This document shows, piece after piece, positions 9,311-16,158 of a stretch of 64,000 nt of DNA (its first letter is position 1; the number at the start of each line of letters is the position of its first letter). Where the stretch lies: the sequence record NC_049849.1, one strand, 5' to 3'. The translations under genes and the position numbers were made by a program. A model generated the notes under the pieces. That model searched no databases. It saw only the letters and a list, made by a program, of their open reading frames with translations, and was not told the origin of the DNA.

Positions 9311-10332
9311 TGGCAAAGCTGAACATGGTTCAACGCGAACCTGCAACTCCATCCGCCAAGCGGGTGTTCGCGCATCAAGACCTGCCGCTGGACAAGATGG
9401 TCGTGTCGGTCACCCGGGCTCAGAACATCTTTGCTTGCATCGGGGCCTACATCGACAGCAAGGCCGAGAAGTGGACGAAGGATCACGGCGAATTGGCAGC
9501 GTTCCACGAAAGCCAAGACGACGACCTGAGCAACGACCTCGAGCTCCTGAACAAAATCTGGTACGAGTATCTGCGCATGTCGATCCTGGTCAAGGTCGGC
9601 ATTACGTACGACGACTACTTGCGGGATTACCCCGAGTACTTCGAGAATGCGAATTCTCAGAAAGACCCTCACGTACGAGTCGAGCAGCTGCGTGCCAACT
9701 CGATGCACTCGTGGGTAAGGAATGCCATTAGCGAGGCATCCGAGGCAGCAGACATTCATACTTGGGATCGTGACCGCAGTTACACGCGCCACGACAGCAC
9801 CCCACAAGTGTATCGCCCGCCGTTAAGCGAATATCGCACGGATACGCTCCCGCCGATTCGCGTTTACGGTAGGCCGTACAAGCCCAATGTTGCACATATG
9901 GTTCAGAAGAAGTGGGCTGGGTATGCAGATGACGCCGCGGTCGCAGAGTATGCAGTGCAAGACTTTGCGGTCGGACGTGAGCACGCTACTATGTTCCGCG
10001 ACGTGGAAAACGGTTCGCTGTTCACCAAGTGGGAAGAAGAGTACGAGCAGCACATTCGCCAGTTCAATGCACGCTGGGCTGACCTCCGCAACATATTGCG
10101 CGAAGCGCTGGAGCGCATTGCGTTTGTATCTGGCGAAGCTTCAGTTGCCTTCGAGCAGAAGCAGAAAGAGAAGCAAGAGCAGGAAGCCCGCGCTGCAGCA
10201 GCCGAAGCAGCCCGCAAGATCGCAGAAGAAAATCGGCCCGCGGTCTCTGTGGTGGAACGCGGCGTCATCGGCATTACGCTGTTCCTAGTCGTTGCATACT
10301 TCGGCTATCAATACATCAAGCCGTACATCTAA
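9310..10332 (+). CDS. hypothetical protein with C-terminal membrane anchor
   Basis: 340 aa; coiled coil then TM GVIGITLFLVVAYFGYQY. Confidence 0.7.
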   Translation: MAKLNMVQREPATPSAKRVFAHQDLPLDKMVVSVTRAQNIFACIGAYIDSKAEKWTKDHGELAAFHESQDDDLSNDLELLNKIWYEYLRMSILVKVGITYDDYLRDYPEYFENANSQKDPHVRVEQLRANSMHSWVRNAISEASEAADIHTWDRDRSYTRHDSTPQVYRPPLSEYRTDTLPPIRVYGRPYKPNVAHMVQKKWAGYADDAAVAEYAVQDFAVGREHATMFRDVENGSLFTKWEEEYEQHIRQFNARWADLRNILREALERIAFVSGEASVAFEQKQKEKQEQEARAAAAEAARKIAEENRPAVSVVERGVIGITLFLVVAYFGYQYIKPYI

Positions 10333-10368
10333 CTCGCAGTCAACCGTTCACAACCAACAAGGATTCAA

Positions 10369-11124
10369 ATGAACGATCTTCAGAAGAAAGCTCAGAAGTA
10401 CAAAACGCTTTTCAAGTTTGGTACCCTGGGCGTCATTCTTTTCGTGCTCGCACCCATTCTGTACACTGTGCTGCAAGCCACCGTCGCCGCAATCGCACTC
10501 GCGGTCATCGGCGGTACGACGTGGATGCTCACTCCGTATCTCTCGACCAAGTTCGCGAACATGCGGCTCAAGCTGGTGAAGGAAGCCGCGAAAGAGAACC
10601 CGATCGAAACTGCGCAACTCGAATTGCAGCGGCGTCGAGCAGAGCTGCAAGAGCGCAAAGCTGCCATTGAGAAGTGGGGCGGTTACGTGCAAGGCTACAT
10701 TCTGAAAGCCAAAGAGCAGGTCGACAAGTATCCGCACAAGAAGCAAGAGTACCTTGAGCGCATTCAGGGCATGCAGGCGTTGCATCAGCGTCGTGCTGAA
10801 CAGTGGCGTGAGACCCGCGCAGCCTTGGAAGTGTACGCCGCTCAAGTGCAAGAGAAGATCGACGAGTATGAAATGGCCAAGGAAGAACTCAAGGTCCGCG
10901 GCATGGTCGATGGCATGGACGAAGCCGACTTGTTCGCGCAGATCAAGATGGACGAAGCCATGAAGGAAATGACCAGCACGGTTGGTATGGCATTCTCCAG
11001 CCTCGAGTCCATTACGCATGACATGGACTACGATCATGAGAAGGGCAAGAAGCTGATCGCAAACAGCCCGACTCAGTCTCTGAACAACCTGGAAGTTATC
11101 GACGTTGAGGCAGTCCTGAAATGA
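10369..11124 (+). CDS. membrane-anchored PspA/IM30-like coiled-coil protein
   Basis: Two N-terminal TMs, then ENPIET and a long amphipathic coiled coil; context resembles yjfJ-type loci. Confidence 0.55.
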   Translation: MNDLQKKAQKYKTLFKFGTLGVILFVLAPILYTVLQATVAAIALAVIGGTTWMLTPYLSTKFANMRLKLVKEAAKENPIETAQLELQRRRAELQERKAAIEKWGGYVQGYILKAKEQVDKYPHKKQEYLERIQGMQALHQRRAEQWRETRAALEVYAAQVQEKIDEYEMAKEELKVRGMVDGMDEADLFAQIKMDEAMKEMTSTVGMAFSSLESITHDMDYDHEKGKKLIANSPTQSLNNLEVIDVEAVLK

Positions 11125-11255
11125 AAACCTGGATCATCGGTGCAGTTCTCATCGCCGCAGTCGTAGCACTCGGCTTCTTTGCCGGCAACAACTCTGTGCC
11201 TTCGGGCTCGAAGTCGCAGCCTTCGCAGTCTCAATCCAACAAGTACAAGTTCTAA
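11121..11255 (+). CDS. small membrane protein (44 aa, not in ORF track)
   Basis: Read by hand: MKTWIIGAVLIAAVVALGFFAGNNS...; ATGA overlap. Confidence 0.55.
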   Translation: MKTWIIGAVLIAAVVALGFFAGNNSVPSGSKSQPSQSQSNKYKF

Positions 11256-11281
11256 ACCAACCCCAACAAAAAGGAAATCAA

Positions 11282-12202
11282 ATGCGTATCACTCGTATCG
11301 TTGTCGCATCCCTTCTGTCTCTGGCAGCCTTCGCCGCTCATGCGCAACAGCTCAAGGTCGCTACCGGCGGTCCGCAAGGCACGTACTCGCAGATGTTCAA
11401 GGAAGTCGCACGAGTCTGCCAAGGTCAGATGAATCTGGTCGAGCAGAACACGTCGGGTTCGGTCGAGAACGTTGACCTGCTGGTCTCGAACAAGATCAAC
11501 GCAGCCATCGTGCAATCGGATGTGCTGAAGTTCCGGGCGCGCAACGAAGCGCAAATCTCGCAGCAAGTGCGCACGGTCTTCGGTCTCCACCCCGAAGAAA
11601 TTCACCTGGTGACTCGTGCGGATGGCCGCAAGGTCGGAGGCTACGGTTTCGGCAACTTCAAGTTCGGCGCCGAGCTGGTTGTGCTGCGTGACTTCCGCGA
11701 CATGGAAGGCAAGGTTGCTGGTGCAGTCGGCGGCTCGTATCTGACGGCGCAAGTCCTGGCCAACAACTCGGGTATCAGCTTCAACGTCGAGCAGTTCGGA
11801 TCGAACGATGACATGCTGCGCGCATTGGCTGAAGGCAAGATCGACGTTGCGGTCATGGTCATGGGTGCTCCTGCAAAGGCCATCACCGAAATGGGTCCCG
11901 AGTTCCGTCTGCTCCCGATTGAAGGGAAGCAAGTCGAAGCGTTGAAGGACTACTACGACGTGACGCGCCTGACCTACAACAACCTGAGCGACTCGCAAGG
12001 CGTTGCTGCTCTGTCGGTGCAAGCTCTGTTTGTCTCGCGCAACTACAAGACCGATGCAATGAAGAATGGTCTGAACACTCTGCGTGAATGCGTGTCCACG
12101 AAGCTGGATGAGCTGAAGGAAGAAATGGGTACGCATCCGAAGTGGCAGCAAGTCGAAGCCGGCCAGAATGGGAAGTGGCTGGTCTACAACAACGGTAACT
12201 AA
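11282..12202 (+). CDS. TAXI-family TRAP transporter solute-binding protein
   Basis: Signal peptide; ATGGPQGTY, TSGSVENV, AIVQSDV, LHPEEIHLV motifs typical of TAXI receptors. Confidence 0.85.
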   Translation: MRITRIVVASLLSLAAFAAHAQQLKVATGGPQGTYSQMFKEVARVCQGQMNLVEQNTSGSVENVDLLVSNKINAAIVQSDVLKFRARNEAQISQQVRTVFGLHPEEIHLVTRADGRKVGGYGFGNFKFGAELVVLRDFRDMEGKVAGAVGGSYLTAQVLANNSGISFNVEQFGSNDDMLRALAEGKIDVAVMVMGAPAKAITEMGPEFRLLPIEGKQVEALKDYYDVTRLTYNNLSDSQGVAALSVQALFVSRNYKTDAMKNGLNTLRECVSTKLDELKEEMGTHPKWQQVEAGQNGKWLVYNNGN

Positions 12203-12208
12203 GTAACG

Positions 12209-12245
12209 ATGGGCAGGGGCTGCGGTCTCTGCCCATTTTTCATTT
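12209..12245 (+). terminator. Rho-independent terminator
   Basis: ATGGGCAGGGGC-TGCG-GTCTCTGCCCAT then TTTTCATTT. Confidence 0.8.
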
Positions 12246-12266
12246 GTGGCATTCAAAGGACTAGAC

Positions 12267-13577
12267 ATGCAAGGTCGTAACGTATTCATCATCGGTTGTG
12301 GTTCCATTGGTCAGGGTCTGATCCCGCTGCTGTTCAAGCACTTCTATATGGAGCAGTCGCGAGTGGTCGTCATCACCGCCGATGAACGCGGCAAGGCTCT
12401 TGCTCAGTACTACGGCTGCTCGTTCCTGATCGAACCTCTCGGTCCTCTGAACTTTGAGTACGTGCTGGACAACGTTGGTCACAAGCCGGGCGACATTATG
12501 ATTAACGTCTCGGTCGATGTGTCGAGTATCGACCTCATGAACTACTGCAACGAGCATGGTCTGATGTATACCGATACATGCGTTGAGCCGTGGAGGGGTG
12601 GATATCAACAAGGCATGACCAACGCGGGACTGCGTACGGCGGCGCTGATGAGTCGTAAGATCGAGGACACTCCGACGGCCTTGATTGCACACGGGGCGAA
12701 TCCTGGGCTGGTTACGCACCTTCTGAAAGAAGGCTTGCGCGAACTCAGCTATGAGCGCCGTGTGATCTATGACCACGAAGCCACAGCGTTCAGCGCATTT
12801 GGATTTAAGGCGGTCCATATCGCAGAGCGTGACACGCAAGACAACGACGAAGAACGACCGAGTGGCAAATTCGTAAATACGTGGTCGGTAGACGGGCTTC
12901 TCAGCGAACTGTACCAGCAAGCTGAAATCGGCGTTGGCACTCACGAGCCTTTCAATCACAATATGTTTCCGACTTCGCGTATCAGTGCCAAGCTCCCTAC
13001 GCGCAGCGCAGATACCAAAGTCAAATCGTGGGTGCCTTCGGGTGGCGCACAAGACGCTTACTTGATTACGCATCACGAGTCCATTTCGCTTGCAGCGTTT
13101 CTTGAAGACTCGGACGGCAATCGACCTACGGTGCTGTACGCGTACAATCCGAGTCGGTTGACTCGCGAGTCCATTGAAGAATGGCGCGCTACTGGATTGC
13201 AAGAGCCGAAGCACAAGGAAGTCATGAAGGGCGTTACCCAAGGGTTTGACGAACTTGGCGTCCTGATGATCGGTCCGAGTCACAGCTACTGGTATGGGTC
13301 GAAGCTCTACGCAGAGGATGCGCGCAAGCTCATGCCGCAAGACTCCCTGCATTTGATTGAAGGTTTTAACGCAACGACGTTGCAGGTCACAGCCACCCTC
13401 ATCGGAGGTCTGAAGTGGATGCTGAAATGGCCCAACGAAGGTGTGGTAGAAGCTGAAGATATTGATAGCAGCTTGGTCCTCAAGTATGCTCATCAGTACA
13501 TCGGCGATGTGCGCGGTCACTTTACCGCATGGTCCTTTGGTAATTGTTCTTTCAACAACTTCTTGATTCAAAAATAA
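12267..13577 (+). CDS. hss: homospermidine synthase
   Basis: Rossmann IIGCGSIG; DTCVEPW, HGANPG, HIAERDTQ, FVNTWSVDG, ITHHES, DELGVL, NATTLQV motifs; AAAGGA SD before ATG 12267. Confidence 0.92.
   Translation: MQGRNVFIIGCGSIGQGLIPLLFKHFYMEQSRVVVITADERGKALAQYYGCSFLIEPLGPLNFEYVLDNVGHKPGDIMINVSVDVSSIDLMNYCNEHGLMYTDTCVEPWRGGYQQGMTNAGLRTAALMSRKIEDTPTALIAHGANPGLVTHLLKEGLRELSYERRVIYDHEATAFSAFGFKAVHIAERDTQDNDEERPSGKFVNTWSVDGLLSELYQQAEIGVGTHEPFNHNMFPTSRISAKLPTRSADTKVKSWVPSGGAQDAYLITHHESISLAAFLEDSDGNRPTVLYAYNPSRLTRESIEEWRATGLQEPKHKEVMKGVTQGFDELGVLMIGPSHSYWYGSKLYAEDARKLMPQDSLHLIEGFNATTLQVTATLIGGLKWMLKWPNEGVVEAEDIDSSLVLKYAHQYIGDVRGHFTAWSFGNCSFNNFLIQK
12871..12879 (+). promoter_or_regulatory. TCGTAAATA motif, intragenic copy in hss
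   Basis: Exact 9-mer; may be an internal promoter or chance. Confidence 0.25.
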
Positions 13578-13961
13578 ATGAAACGATCAGCGAAGATCAC
13601 CCTGGTACTTCTCGGCACGATGGCACTTACGGCGTGCGGCGATGGCAACGAGTCTCGTCAGACGACGCGCCAACAGTACAAAAGCATGGCCGACTGCCAA
13701 CGCGAATGGGGCACCGACAGTCGGAATTGCACAACCTCAAGCAGCGGCCACTTCTTTGGCCCGCTTTATTTCTGGAATCACTCGACGGGTACGCCGATGG
13801 TAGTGGGTGCGGGCGGTGAGACTCGCGCAGTTCCTAACGCCTATGCGAATCCGGCCAACAGTGCAGTAGCGCGCAGTTCTGCAATCAGCACTTCGACCAG
13901 CACCGCAATCGTCCGTGGCGGCTTCGGCAGCACCGGCTCTTCGTTCTCCGCAGGCGGCTGA
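13578..13961 (+). CDS. DUF1190-like (YgiB/YjfM-type) lipoprotein
   Basis: Lipobox LTAC; CQREWG..C; Ser/Thr/Gly-rich tail with RGGFG ending AGG; directly upstream of a GSP-synthetase-like gene. Confidence 0.8.
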   Translation: MKRSAKITLVLLGTMALTACGDGNESRQTTRQQYKSMADCQREWGTDSRNCTTSSSGHFFGPLYFWNHSTGTPMVVGAGGETRAVPNAYANPANSAVARSSAISTSTSTAIVRGGFGSTGSSFSAGG

Positions 13962-13964
13962 TAC

Positions 13965-15092
13965 ATGCAACGAGTCAAGGTTCAAGAGCGTGCCGACAAG
14001 GCAGACAAGCTGGAAGCGATCGGGCTTTCGTTCCATGCGTGGGATGACTACTGGAACGAGGGAGTCGCCTACAAGTTTGAGTCGGCAGAAATCGACAAGC
14101 TCGAAGCCGCAGCCAATGAACTGCATGGCATGTGTTTGAACGCAGCGCGCTATGCGATCAATCACAACCGCCTCGGCCAGATGGGAATTCCCGAGCAGTT
14201 CCATGAAGCGATTCGCCAGTCGTTCGACCGCAACGAGTTCTCGCTGTACGGCCGCTTCGACTTCGCGTTCGACGGCGATCAAATCAAGATGCTCGAGTAC
14301 AACGCAGACACTCCGACCTCGCTGTTGGAATCCGCGGTGGCTCAGTGGGACTGGATGGAAGAAGTCAAGCCTGGCACCGATCAGTTCAACAGCCTGCATG
14401 AGCGACTGATCGAGCAGTGGCAGAAGTTCCGCGGTGCGAAGAAAGTCTACTTTGCGTCGTTGCGCGACAACGAAGAAGACTGGGTCTGCGTTCACTACAT
14501 GATGGACACAGCCGCGCAAGCTGGCTTGGAAGTTCAGCACATCTGGCTGGATGATATCGGCTACGATCCGATGAACCAAGTCTTCGTTGACGACCGCAAC
14601 CGACCCATCGAAGCGCTGTTCAAGCTCTACCCGTGGGAATGGTTGATGCGTGAGGACTTCGCGCAGTACTTAACGACGACCAAGACCCAGTTCGTTGAAC
14701 CCATCTGGAAGTCGGTGTTGTCGAACAAGGCGCTGCTGCCGATCTTGTGGGAAGTCTACCGCGATCATCCGCTGCTGTTGCCGTCGTACTTCGAAGCCGA
14801 CAAGCTCAAGTCGTTTGCCAAGAAGCCTTTCTTTTCGCGTGAAGGTGCCAACGTCGAACTGCATGAGAATGGCTTGATGCAGGACTTCGACACCGGACCG
14901 TATGGTGCTGAAGGTTACATCTACCAGCAGCTGATCCAGCTTCCCAAGTTCGACGACGTGTATCCGATCATCGGTGCGTGGATCGTGGGTGAAGAGTCGG
15001 CTGGTATCTGCATCCGCGAAGATCGGCTGCGCATCACCACCAACATGAGCCACTTCATTCCGCACTACTTCACCGACAACGAGGAAGCATGA
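13965..15092 (+). CDS. glutathionylspermidine synthetase-like ATP-grasp ligase (YgiC/YjfC type, no amidase domain)
   Basis: LYGRFDF, MLEYNADTPTSLLES, QFNSLHE, FKLYPWEW, EPIWKSVLSNKALL, KPFFSREGANV motifs. Confidence 0.92.
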   Translation: MQRVKVQERADKADKLEAIGLSFHAWDDYWNEGVAYKFESAEIDKLEAAANELHGMCLNAARYAINHNRLGQMGIPEQFHEAIRQSFDRNEFSLYGRFDFAFDGDQIKMLEYNADTPTSLLESAVAQWDWMEEVKPGTDQFNSLHERLIEQWQKFRGAKKVYFASLRDNEEDWVCVHYMMDTAAQAGLEVQHIWLDDIGYDPMNQVFVDDRNRPIEALFKLYPWEWLMREDFAQYLTTTKTQFVEPIWKSVLSNKALLPILWEVYRDHPLLLPSYFEADKLKSFAKKPFFSREGANVELHENGLMQDFDTGPYGAEGYIYQQLIQLPKFDDVYPIIGAWIVGEESAGICIREDRLRITTNMSHFIPHYFTDNEEA

Positions 15093-15364
15093 GCGCCCTA
15101 CAGACCCTGAACGAACTTCGTGCGCGTGTACATCTGCGCACTCGTGTCCTGCCAAATATCATCGACGCCGCAAAGCGTATGATGACGCTTGGCGCTTCGG
15201 TAGAAGAAGTCAATGAGCTGCTCGACGCTTTCGGCTACGAAGGCATGAAGGTCAAGCTTACCGCAGAGGATCAACGAGACACGTACGCTCTGTCGGCTAC
15301 CTTCATGGGCTACACGGAAGTCAAGCTCTTCGAAGTGGTAACCGTCGATGACGAAGCTGCATAG
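15089..15364 (+). CDS. hypothetical protein
   Basis: ATGA overlap; GAGGAAG SD. Confidence 0.6.
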   Translation: MSALQTLNELRARVHLRTRVLPNIIDAAKRMMTLGASVEEVNELLDAFGYEGMKVKLTAEDQRDTYALSATFMGYTEVKLFEVVTVDDEAA

Positions 15365-15473
15365 ATTTTTCGCCATCATCTTGCTTGGCATCGCTATCGT
15401 TTACATAGCGTACGGTGCAAGCATAACCGCATATCTGTTTTTCAAAATCTACAACCTACTGGAGCAATCCCGC

Positions 15474-15860
15474 ATGGCAAACATCCTGAATACCTTCCTG
15501 TACTTCTTCACGTCGCTGGCTATGCTGGCACTGTTCATGGTCGTTTACGAGAAGGTCACGCCGTATCGTGAATGGGTCGAAATCAAGAACGGCAACACCG
15601 CGGCGGCTATCGCATTCGGCGGCGCGCTGATCGGCTTTGTTCTCCCGCTGTGGTCCGTCATCATGAGCACGCACTCGGTGCTCGAAGTCATCAAGTGGGG
15701 CTTCCTGGTCGGTGCCATTCAAATCGTTTCGTTCCTGGTCATTCATCGTCTGCGCGGCTTCGGCGACTGCGTACGTGAGGGTCGAGTGTCGAGCGCGACG
15801 TTCCTGGCTTTCGCATCCATTGCTATCGGCATCATCAACGCAGCTTCGATCAGCTACTGA
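15474..15860 (+). CDS. DUF350 (YjfL-type) membrane protein
   Basis: Four TMs; VYEKVTPYREWVEIKNGNTAAAIAFGGALIG signature; GGAG SD before ATG 15474. Confidence 0.85.
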   Translation: MANILNTFLYFFTSLAMLALFMVVYEKVTPYREWVEIKNGNTAAAIAFGGALIGFVLPLWSVIMSTHSVLEVIKWGFLVGAIQIVSFLVIHRLRGFGDCVREGRVSSATFLAFASIAIGIINAASISY

Positions 15861-15863
15861 ACC

Positions 15864-16124
15864 ATGCAACTTCCCGACAATCGCTTTACTGCAGAGGAAG
15901 CCCGCGCCAAGATGGCAGAGGCTTTCAAGATCAACCCGCGCAAGGTCATGCTGGAGCTACGCAGAGCATACGGCCTGATTGAGCAGGACATAGCCAAGGG
16001 GTCAGTGGCCTTCTTGATTCGAGGTTCTGCCATGCGTGAAGCCGTAGCAGAGCAACTGCGCAAGGATGGTTACACGGTCTCGCTGTGTGCGAGTTCTGAC
16101 AAGATCATCGTCTACTGGAAGTAA
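15864..16124 (+). CDS. hypothetical protein
   Basis: Last ORF before the terminator. Confidence 0.6.
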   Translation: MQLPDNRFTAEEARAKMAEAFKINPRKVMLELRRAYGLIEQDIAKGSVAFLIRGSAMREAVAEQLRKDGYTVSLCASSDKIIVYWK

Positions 16125-16130
16125 AGCAAT

Positions 16131-16158
16131 GGGTGGGGCCTTCGGGTCTCACCCTTTT
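16131..16158 (+). terminator. Rho-independent terminator
   Basis: GGGTGGGGCC-TTCG-GGTCTCACCC-TTTT (cUUCGg loop). Confidence 0.8.

Follow-up and report, generated by a model that had tools for sequence, protein, structure and literature searches.

Homospermidine synthase in a putative polyamine-conjugation operon of the Achromobacter jumbo phage Motura

Judged from gene order and phylogeny, the gene for homospermidine synthase (hss; its product, HSS) of the Achromobacter jumbo phage Motura belongs to a four-gene module, together with the genes for a lipoprotein, an ATP-grasp ligase and a DUF350 membrane protein, and this module has a dedicated HSS clade with a phage subclade inside it. We found this in a stretch of 64,000 nucleotides from sequence record NC_049849.1 (hereafter 'the window'), of which positions 10369-15860 had been interpreted, in a preliminary description, as a phage-encoded polyamine and envelope cassette. 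That part showed 100% identity to positions 72369-77860 of the Motura record MN094788.1 (221,431 bp); window positions are the positions of that record minus 62,000.

The clustering itself has been reported. Li et al. (PNAS 2023, Fig. 4B; PMC9992855) showed that hss of Motura lies in a cluster with DUF genes and the gene for a homologue of glutathionylspermidine synthetase, noted that hss and gss are unlinked in phage phiRSL1 and that the clustering recurs in beta-proteobacteria, and inferred a potential for glutathionylhomospermidine, with homospermidine as the ligase substrate. The HSS enzymes of phiRSL1 and of giant viruses have been assayed, and that of phiRSL1 is reported to be functional, as are those of giant viruses (PMC9992855). 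Therefore, neither the core observation nor the homospermidine inference is new. The preliminary description also named homospermidine as the amine used by the ligase; the linkage and co-phylogeny of hss and the ligase gene are in line with this proposal, which was already contained in PMC9992855. The account of Li et al. differs from ours in that the product is glutathionylhomospermidine and that the lipoprotein and the DUF350 protein are not core partners there. In addition, the YgiC/YjfC signature of the ligase, the phage subclade and the upstream gene triad, all described below, are not treated in it, and the four-gene module with its own clades is a point added by the present analysis.

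Layout and distribution of the hss module

The genes and terminator-like hairpins of the unit are as follows, in window positions.

12208-12237, + strand: terminator-like hairpin with a 13-bp stem and a T run, between an upstream gene triad (g1-g1b-g2) and the polyamine operon
12267-13577, + strand: hss, predicted bacterial-type homospermidine synthase of 436 amino acids with Sacchrp_dh_NADP and Sacchrp_dh_C domains
13578-13961, + strand: g4, predicted lipoprotein of 127 amino acids with a lipobox Cys20, a Cys40...Cys51 module and a C-terminal RGGFG-x9-GG
13965-15092, + strand: g5, predicted ATP-grasp acid-amine ligase of 375 amino acids, stand-alone and without an amidase domain
15089-15364, + strand: g6, ORFan of 91 amino acids, overlapping the ligase stop codon (ATGA)
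15348-15860, + strand: g7, predicted DUF350 (YjfL-family) membrane protein, 170 amino acids as annotated
15864-16124, + strand: g8, ORFan of 86 amino acids, the last gene before the terminator
16131-16154, + strand: terminator-like hairpin with a 10-bp stem and a T run, closing the operon

Between the two hairpins lies a six-gene unit (12267-16124) in the order hss, lipoprotein, ligase, 91-amino-acid open reading frame (ORF), DUF350 and 86-amino-acid ORF, and all junctions from hss to the last ORF are abutting, 3 nucleotides apart or overlapping. The hairpins that had been claimed at 12209 and 16131 are real, and so is the tight packing claimed for the genes from hss to DUF350, but the end at 15860 had to be moved because g8 precedes the second hairpin. 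Given that every one of the 47 genes annotated in the surrounding 21 kb lies on the + strand, co-directionality alone is uninformative. Counted over the whole region, terminator-like sites are as numerous as expected from shuffling, and therefore it is the position of the hairpins that matters rather than their number. On balance, we regard 12267-16124 as one operon. An Rfam scan showed no family, and a regulatory RNA upstream of hss was rejected; the hss leader is only ~29 nucleotides long. Antisense ORFs (e.g. 12261-13571 on the minus strand) were without family matches and were discarded as composition artefacts.

Over its full length, Motura HSS matched solved HSS structures, the best being 2ph5 (5e-82), in which residues 16-445 of the chain align with residues 6-423 of the Motura protein. 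Krossa et al. (PMC4725965) described eight residues of the Blastochloris enzyme BvHSS as substrate-binding or catalytic (N162, E210, W229, E237, H296, E298, Y323 and D361). Mapped via the alignment, these correspond to N145, E187, W206, E214, H269, E271, Y293 and D328 of the Motura protein, so that all eight are conserved, and the same positions are invariant in 27 relatives. On this sequence evidence the identity of the gene is secure, and formation of homospermidine is predicted. The earlier claim that the phage encodes its own polyamine synthase thus agrees with a full-length HSS whose eight active-site residues are intact. The most likely start codon is the ATG at 12267, which is preceded by an AAGGA ribosome-binding site, whereas a GTG at 12246 is unlikely because it sits in the T-tail of the terminator.

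The conserved core, namely hss, lipoprotein, ligase and DUF350 in the same order and on one strand, was found again in three contigs of uncultured phages and in no fewer than nine loci from bacteria or metagenomes. The phage carriers are two jumbo-phage contigs from IMG/VR, 424.5 kb and 242.9 kb long, and a phage-like contig of 25 kb, and the bacterial carriers are the Zoogloea sp. LCSB751 chromosome, Herbaspirillum, Acidovorax, Limnohabitans and metagenome-assembled genomes (MAGs) of beta-proteobacteria. The HSS proteins closest to that of Motura come from these three contigs and the Zoogloea chromosome. Linkage of hss to these genes in related phages, which the preliminary description had set as a check, is therefore present, in the same order, in the three phage contigs. 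Seven of the 80 best bacterial HSS loci have the lipoprotein and ligase genes directly downstream, six of them with a detectable DUF350 gene; these seven include the four closest HSS relatives, and all the named ones are beta-proteobacteria. Among viral HSS contigs, the trio of lipoprotein, ligase and DUF350 accompanies hss in three of 54. Single-protein scans of the viral contigs with the ligase or HSS matched only Motura, and the relatives were found by profile queries. Seen from the ligase side, the trio is common, and hss stands before it only in two loci (L156 and L157) and the phage contigs. The HSS of L156 and L157 is a true but distant one (30% identity to Motura; 1.7e-82 to solved HSS). 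No other polyamine enzymes were found beside the trios that lack hss, where the neighbours are unrelated genes.

We then compared the phylogenies of HSS and the ligase, using neighbour-joining trees without support values. The HSS tree comprised 136 proteins. The cassette-linked ones, 13 in number, all fell into one exclusive clade, within which the four phage proteins formed an exclusive subclade; phiRSL1 HSS fell outside the cassette-linked clade. In the ligase tree, the hss-linked ligases lay in a clade of 20, and the phage ligases, including that of phiRSL1, again formed an exclusive subclade. An HSS, linked or not, is encoded by each of the five phage genomes or contigs in this ligase subclade. 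Given that the cassette-linked HSS proteins form an exclusive clade, long co-inheritance is suggested, and the sequence comparisons support a functional tie of hss to the lipoprotein-ligase-DUF350 genes. Across 145 ligase-positive phage records, HSS was found only in those of Motura and phiRSL1; the ~140 HSS-negative records are mostly T4-like phages of Aeromonas and Acinetobacter. The phage counts for ligase and DUF350 are inflated by two Salmonella chromosomal contigs in the phage collection (AGRM01000002.1 and AFYI01000007.1), which were also the source of our YgiB/YgiC and YjfI-YjfC comparators.

The operons of beta-proteobacteria, among them Zoogloea sp. LCSB751 and Herbaspirillum sp. CF444, are identical to that of Motura in core gene content, order and strand; at the protein level, HSS is 44-46% identical, the ligase 56-60% and DUF350 38-42%. 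They differ in being cellular and in lacking the ORFan insertions g6 and g8, and the Motura proteins are closer to those of other phages (63-69% identity for DUF350) than to the beta-proteobacterial ones. Phage phiRSL1 (ORF051-gsp, with hss as ORF110) resembles Motura in encoding an HSS and in its ligase (61% identity), lipoprotein (39%) and a TAXI-like protein (39%), but its hss is 34 kb away and of another HSS clade, and it has no DUF350; ORF053, considered as a divergent DUF350 protein, was rejected as it has no Pfam match and no hydrophobic segment. HSS is an NAD+-dependent enzyme, and phiRSL1 hss (record 52.5-60.2 kb; loci L003 and L153) has NAD+ salvage and NUDIX genes as neighbours, namely pncB and the genes for an NMN adenylyltransferase/Nudix protein and a MutT/NUDIX hydrolase.

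Some further observations concern the surroundings of hss. In two independent cases (P0009, 593 amino acids; P0192, 578 amino acids, L024 6676-8478), the hss frame continues in frame into the lipoprotein gene. The predicted HSS-lipoprotein products keep the internal signal peptide, and they may reflect a genuine fusion, the loss of a stop codon or an error of assembly. In the 424.5-kb phage contig and a relative (L013 6683-7975; L015 6683-7975), a Na_H_Exchanger-family protein of 430 amino acids is encoded 26 nucleotides upstream of hss, and a Band_7 protein ~5 kb further upstream.

A proposed route to conjugated homospermidine

We consider it slightly more probable than not that the operon core is a beta-proteobacterial module that was taken up once by a jumbo-phage lineage and that makes and conjugates homospermidine. 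In this scheme, HSS would condense two host putrescines into sym-homospermidine, using NAD+. The cytoplasmic ATP-grasp ligase, spending ATP, would then join one primary amine of homospermidine to a carboxylate, which more likely belongs to a peptide or a protein C-terminus than to glutathione, with the lipoprotein and the DUF350 protein as fixed envelope partners of the ligation. The module would supply its own amine in beta-proteobacterial hosts that typically contain putrescine and 2-hydroxyputrescine and no triamine. The pattern of putrescine and 2-hydroxyputrescine is that described for beta-proteobacteria (PMC10385936), and we infer by analogy that the Achromobacter host likewise has no triamine. 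Homospermidine as the amine substrate, and the type of acid substrate, we infer from the genes and their relatives.

If this scheme is true, it bears on protein families of wider interest. YgiC/YjfC, DUF1190 and DUF350 proteins are widespread and occur also in E. coli, and no physiological role is known for them. The form of the module that is linked to hss points to the likely amine substrate. It also offers small self-contained operons, in culturable beta-proteobacteria and one culturable phage, in which the product could be sought. As predicted from its genes, the operon would be a rare example of a virus-borne multi-step pathway of polyamine conjugation.

Several observations weigh against the proposed scheme. 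Linkage of hss to the trio is a minority state, at 7/80 best bacterial HSS loci and 3/54 viral HSS contigs, and the close ligase relatives L155 and L158-L161 have the trio without an adjacent hss. The two genes lie 34 kb apart in phiRSL1, the two trees are neighbour-joining trees without support values, and the ligase is cytoplasmic while both conserved partners are predicted in the envelope. We also considered the possibility that two independent functions are involved, in which HSS provides the phage with more triamine for replication, translation or DNA packaging, the trio serves an unrelated purpose with an amine of the host, and the adjacency reflects co-transfer only. The separation of hss and ligase in phiRSL1 would fit such independence, as would the facts that most trios are without hss and most hss genes without the trio, and that ~140 phage records have the ligase and no HSS; the functional HSS enzymes of phiRSL1 and giant viruses have been explained without the ligase (PMC9992855). 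However, the genes keep their order and orientation in phages and bacteria alike, even where HSS identity falls to ~30%, the cassette-linked HSS proteins form an exclusive clade, and the hss and lipoprotein frames run together in two cases. In addition, all five phages of the ligase subclade keep some HSS, even after its apparent replacement in phiRSL1. Thus, independent functions seem unlikely to us, although they deserve to be kept in mind.

Ligase, lipoprotein and DUF350 protein

The ligase g5 matched Pfam GSP_synth at 4.5e-144 over positions 3-371 of 371. We compared it with characterized members of this family and found 2.7e-94 and 319 bits for YgiC (7uk8), 2e-85 and 290 bits for YjfC, and 3e-32 and 115 bits for glutathionylspermidine synthetase (Gss); the pair of trypanothione synthetase (TryS) and Gss gave 146 and 115 bits. 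The alignment with Gss begins only at Gss residue 257, and g5 reached 161.9 bits with the NCBIfam Gss equivalog, for which 882 are required; together with the missing amidase domain, this shows that g5 is not a bifunctional Gss (synthetase/amidase). E. coli Gss and TryS have in common with g5 the ATP-grasp synthetase fold family and the Mg/ATP motif R-x-D...E-Y-N-A-D. They differ from it on the substrate side, where E-Y-N-A-D is followed by T-P-T-S (the ADTPTS signature) in the Motura ligase, in YgiC and YjfC and in each of the 12 cassette ligases, and by S-A-S-C/T in Gss and TryS. The preliminary description had likened the ligase to that of the yjf locus, and these scores and the T-P-T-S motif place it with YgiC and YjfC rather than with Gss. 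YgiC and YjfC have been reported to lack glutathionylspermidine synthetase activity and to ligate peptides with spermidine, as cited in PMC11762307. Given that g5 carries the YgiC/YjfC signature and not that of Gss, the conjugate is more likely one of a peptide than one of glutathione; the assignment to the YgiC/YjfC type, with a peptide as the likelier acid, is a further point that our analysis adds. In one cassette ligase, of an Acidovorax MAG (L064 ~9774-10895), there is one in-frame stop, so that a pseudogene or a sequencing error is possible.

The same evidence bears on the synthesis of glutathionylhomospermidine (Li et al. 2023), in which the glycine carboxylate of glutathione would be joined to phage homospermidine, giving a thiol-polyamine conjugate akin to glutathionylspermidine. 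This proposal draws on the membership of the ligase in Pfam GSP_synth, on the common R-x-D...E-Y-N-A-D motif and on the clustering of hss and gss, which was read in this way in PMC9992855. However, the scores favour YgiC and YjfC over Gss by a wide margin, the T-P-T-S signature is that of YgiC and YjfC, and these two enzymes, according to the reports cited above, do not make glutathionylspermidine. A glutathione conjugate is therefore rather improbable in our judgement.

The lipoprotein g4 scored 20.9 bits against DUF1190 (PF06693), just under the gathering cutoff of 22. Its DUF1190-family traits are the lipobox, the place directly upstream of the ligase and a C-terminal (R/K)GG(F/Y)G tail with small residues at its end. 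Its identity to ORF051 of phiRSL1 is 39%, and clear DUF1190 proteins occupy its position in phages OC, Phosso and Aeromonas 31. We next counted ORFs with [RKS]GG[FYW]G in their last 40 residues on the same strand and no more than 2.5 kb from the ligase. Such an ORF was present in 61/65 metagenomic loci and in 41/49 viral loci with room upstream, whereas among other ORFs, used as a control, the motif occurred in 2/3097. Among 148 representatives of the lipoprotein family, RGGFG (92-98%), the lipobox Cys and a Y...C...W...C...GP module were conserved, and 105 of 150 lipoprotein sequences end in Gly-Gly. The RGGFG...GG tail also occurs in Salmonella YgiB and YjfM and in lipoproteins of T4-like phages. 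Judged from these counts, the lipoprotein is the ligase's most constant, near-obligate partner, which again is a point added here.

These results raise the question of whether the lipoprotein tail, in which (R/K)GGFG precedes ~10 small residues and usually a final Gly-Gly, could itself be the acid substrate of the ligase. Capping of its C-terminal carboxylate with homospermidine (in enterobacteria, with spermidine) would then yield an envelope lipoprotein that is tagged with a polyamine and in whose export or anchoring the DUF350 protein could have a role. The idea is based on the tail ORFs beside the ligase and on the conservation of RGGFG, and in the related enzyme Gss, too, the joined acid is a C-terminal glycine. 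However, the ligase is cytoplasmic whereas the lipoprotein is exported, and the last residue is Gly in only ~70% of members. Thus, we offer it only as a tentative and fairly doubtful suggestion. If it were true, the orphan YgiB/YgiC and YjfL/M/C families would gain a function, and the reaction would represent a new kind of protein modification.

The DUF350 protein g7 matched PF03994 at 4.3e-33 (114.6 bits; cutoff 26), has hydrophobic segments indicating a multi-pass protein, and is 35% identical to Salmonella YjfL. Its homologues, of 123-130 amino acids, align only from ~residue 44, and a 42-residue hydrophobic N-terminal extension is unique to the annotated g7. Therefore, Met43 (15474, preceded by GGAG) is an alternative start, which would abolish the overlap with g6. 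For g6 and g8 we found no family and no homologue in ~280 related loci or beside any other ligase; g6 had been considered as a conserved substrate peptide, and this was dropped as it has no homologue in any related locus.

The enterobacterial operons tolC-ygiB-ygiC and yjfI-J-(kch)-K-L-M-C resemble that of Motura in having a DUF1190 lipoprotein gene directly upstream of the YgiC/YjfC ligase gene and in the lipoprotein tail. They differ in that they contain no polyamine synthase and have the order DUF350-DUF1190-ligase, and the yjf operon has, in addition, YjfI, the PspA-type YjfJ, a channel and YjfK, which are absent from the Motura window. Operons of PspA, CesT, ligase, DUF350, DUF1190 and DUF2491 have been described by Ravi et al. 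(mSystems 2024). The enterobacterial order yjfL-M-C was also seen in a number of large, putatively viral IMG/VR contigs (L247-L251, L255, L257-L259 and L283).

The upstream gene triad

Upstream of the first hairpin, three further genes precede the operon.

10369-11124, + strand: g1, protein of 251 amino acids with a hydrophobic N-terminal stretch (~residues 12-55) followed by a long helical region; first gene of the triad
11121-11255, + strand: g1b, 44 amino acids with a single hydrophobic helix (hydrophobic residues 1-27); middle gene
11282-12202, + strand: g2, 306 amino acids with a signal peptide, predicted TAXI-like (NMT1_3) solute-binding protein; third gene

The preliminary description had counted six co-directional genes; all of these are on the + strand, but g1b, between g1 and g2, had been overlooked. 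Five of its six family calls hold, with a distant TAXI-like protein, HSS, a weakly matching DUF1190 lipoprotein, the ligase and DUF350, whereas the call of g1 as PspA-like fails. In the case of g2, the score was 48.6 bits against NMT1_3 (cutoff 27), 76.5 against TIGR02122 TAXI, under its cutoff of 84.35, and 5.6e-6 against solved TAXI structures. It is 39-41% identical to its homologues in phiRSL1 (ORF101), RP12/RP31 and FLC phages, and by these matches it is a distant TAXI-like binding protein. No TRAP membrane component domain was found among the genes neighbouring g2.

We also searched for a relationship between g1 and PspA. PspA_IM30 was absent from g1 even at E<=10, whereas the true Salmonella YjfJ gave 1e-49 as a control in the same search; BLASTP of g1 against Salmonella YjfJ gave nothing at E<=100, and phmmer against the PDB gave nothing relevant. 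A word-based homologue search with g1 matched only itself, and the structural model is therefore a single-sequence one, all-helical with a pLDDT of 64. Foldseek with this model gave nothing at E<=1e-3 (best E 0.046) and neither PspA nor Vipp1; the top matches were BAR domains, apoA-IV and generic helical bundles, and an archaeal ESCRT-III protein was listed at E 0.41 and TM 0.28. The hydrophobic membrane segments of g1 are also unlike PspA, and all these comparisons speak against g1 as PspA. It belongs to phrog_27316, a PHROG of unknown function, and has no Pfam family. In addition, tblastn of the 64-kb window with the Salmonella proteins YjfI (DUF2170), YjfJ and YjfK (DUF2491) gave nothing at E<=0.1, and no homologues of the three were found in 132 ligase loci. 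Therefore, of the 6-7 yjf genes the phage has three, which are arranged differently, rather than the near-complete module that had been claimed.

The triad has a distribution of its own, among jumbo phages of Ralstonia. In RP12/RP31 its order is kept (ORF195-194-193); g1 is 27% identical to ORF195 of Ralstonia phage RP12 (E 1e-27), and ORFs of the size of g1b stand at the same position in RP12 (ORF194, 47 amino acids) and phiRSL1 (ORF100, 58 amino acids). Homologues of g1 and g2 also occur in phages FLC1-1B and FLC4-3B, and three ORFs of phiRSL1 (ORF099-100-101) are arranged in the same way, although similarity of ORF099 to g1 could not be detected at the sequence level. In RP12, RP31 and the FLC phages, both the ligase and HSS are absent. 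Given that the triad is present in phages without hss or ligase, the hairpin at 12208 separates a distinct module, and from this distribution g1-g1b-g2 is a separate module adjacent to the polyamine operon and not, as had been thought, a part of the same cassette.

These results leave very little room for the YjfJ(PspA)-coupled envelope-stress or anti-defence system acting during infection that was first proposed. In its favour, the enterobacterial yjf operon combines genes for DUF350, DUF1190 and the ligase with one for a PspA homologue, and two cassette proteins are predicted to lie in the envelope. However, g1 lacks PspA similarity, YjfI, YjfJ and YjfK are missing, g1-g2 occur without the cassette in other phages, and PADLOC matched no defence-related model; the envelope role comes down to that predicted location.

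The triad occurs in jumbo phages of Burkholderiales hosts with or without polyamine genes (RP12, L152 3954-5840; phiRSL1, L153 3003-4867), and in phiRSL1 the distance from the TAXI-like gene to hss, which follows downstream, is 7 kb. TAXI-like genes may thus be loosely associated with polyamine genes. A second instance of a TAXI-like gene beside this ligase was found in a 112-kb uncultured phage contig (IMGVR_UViG_3300037471_000902, L236 6552-10310), in which genes for a DUF1190-like lipoprotein, the ligase, a 93-amino-acid ORF, an NMT1_3/TAXI-like protein and an R2K ATP-grasp protein stand in a row.

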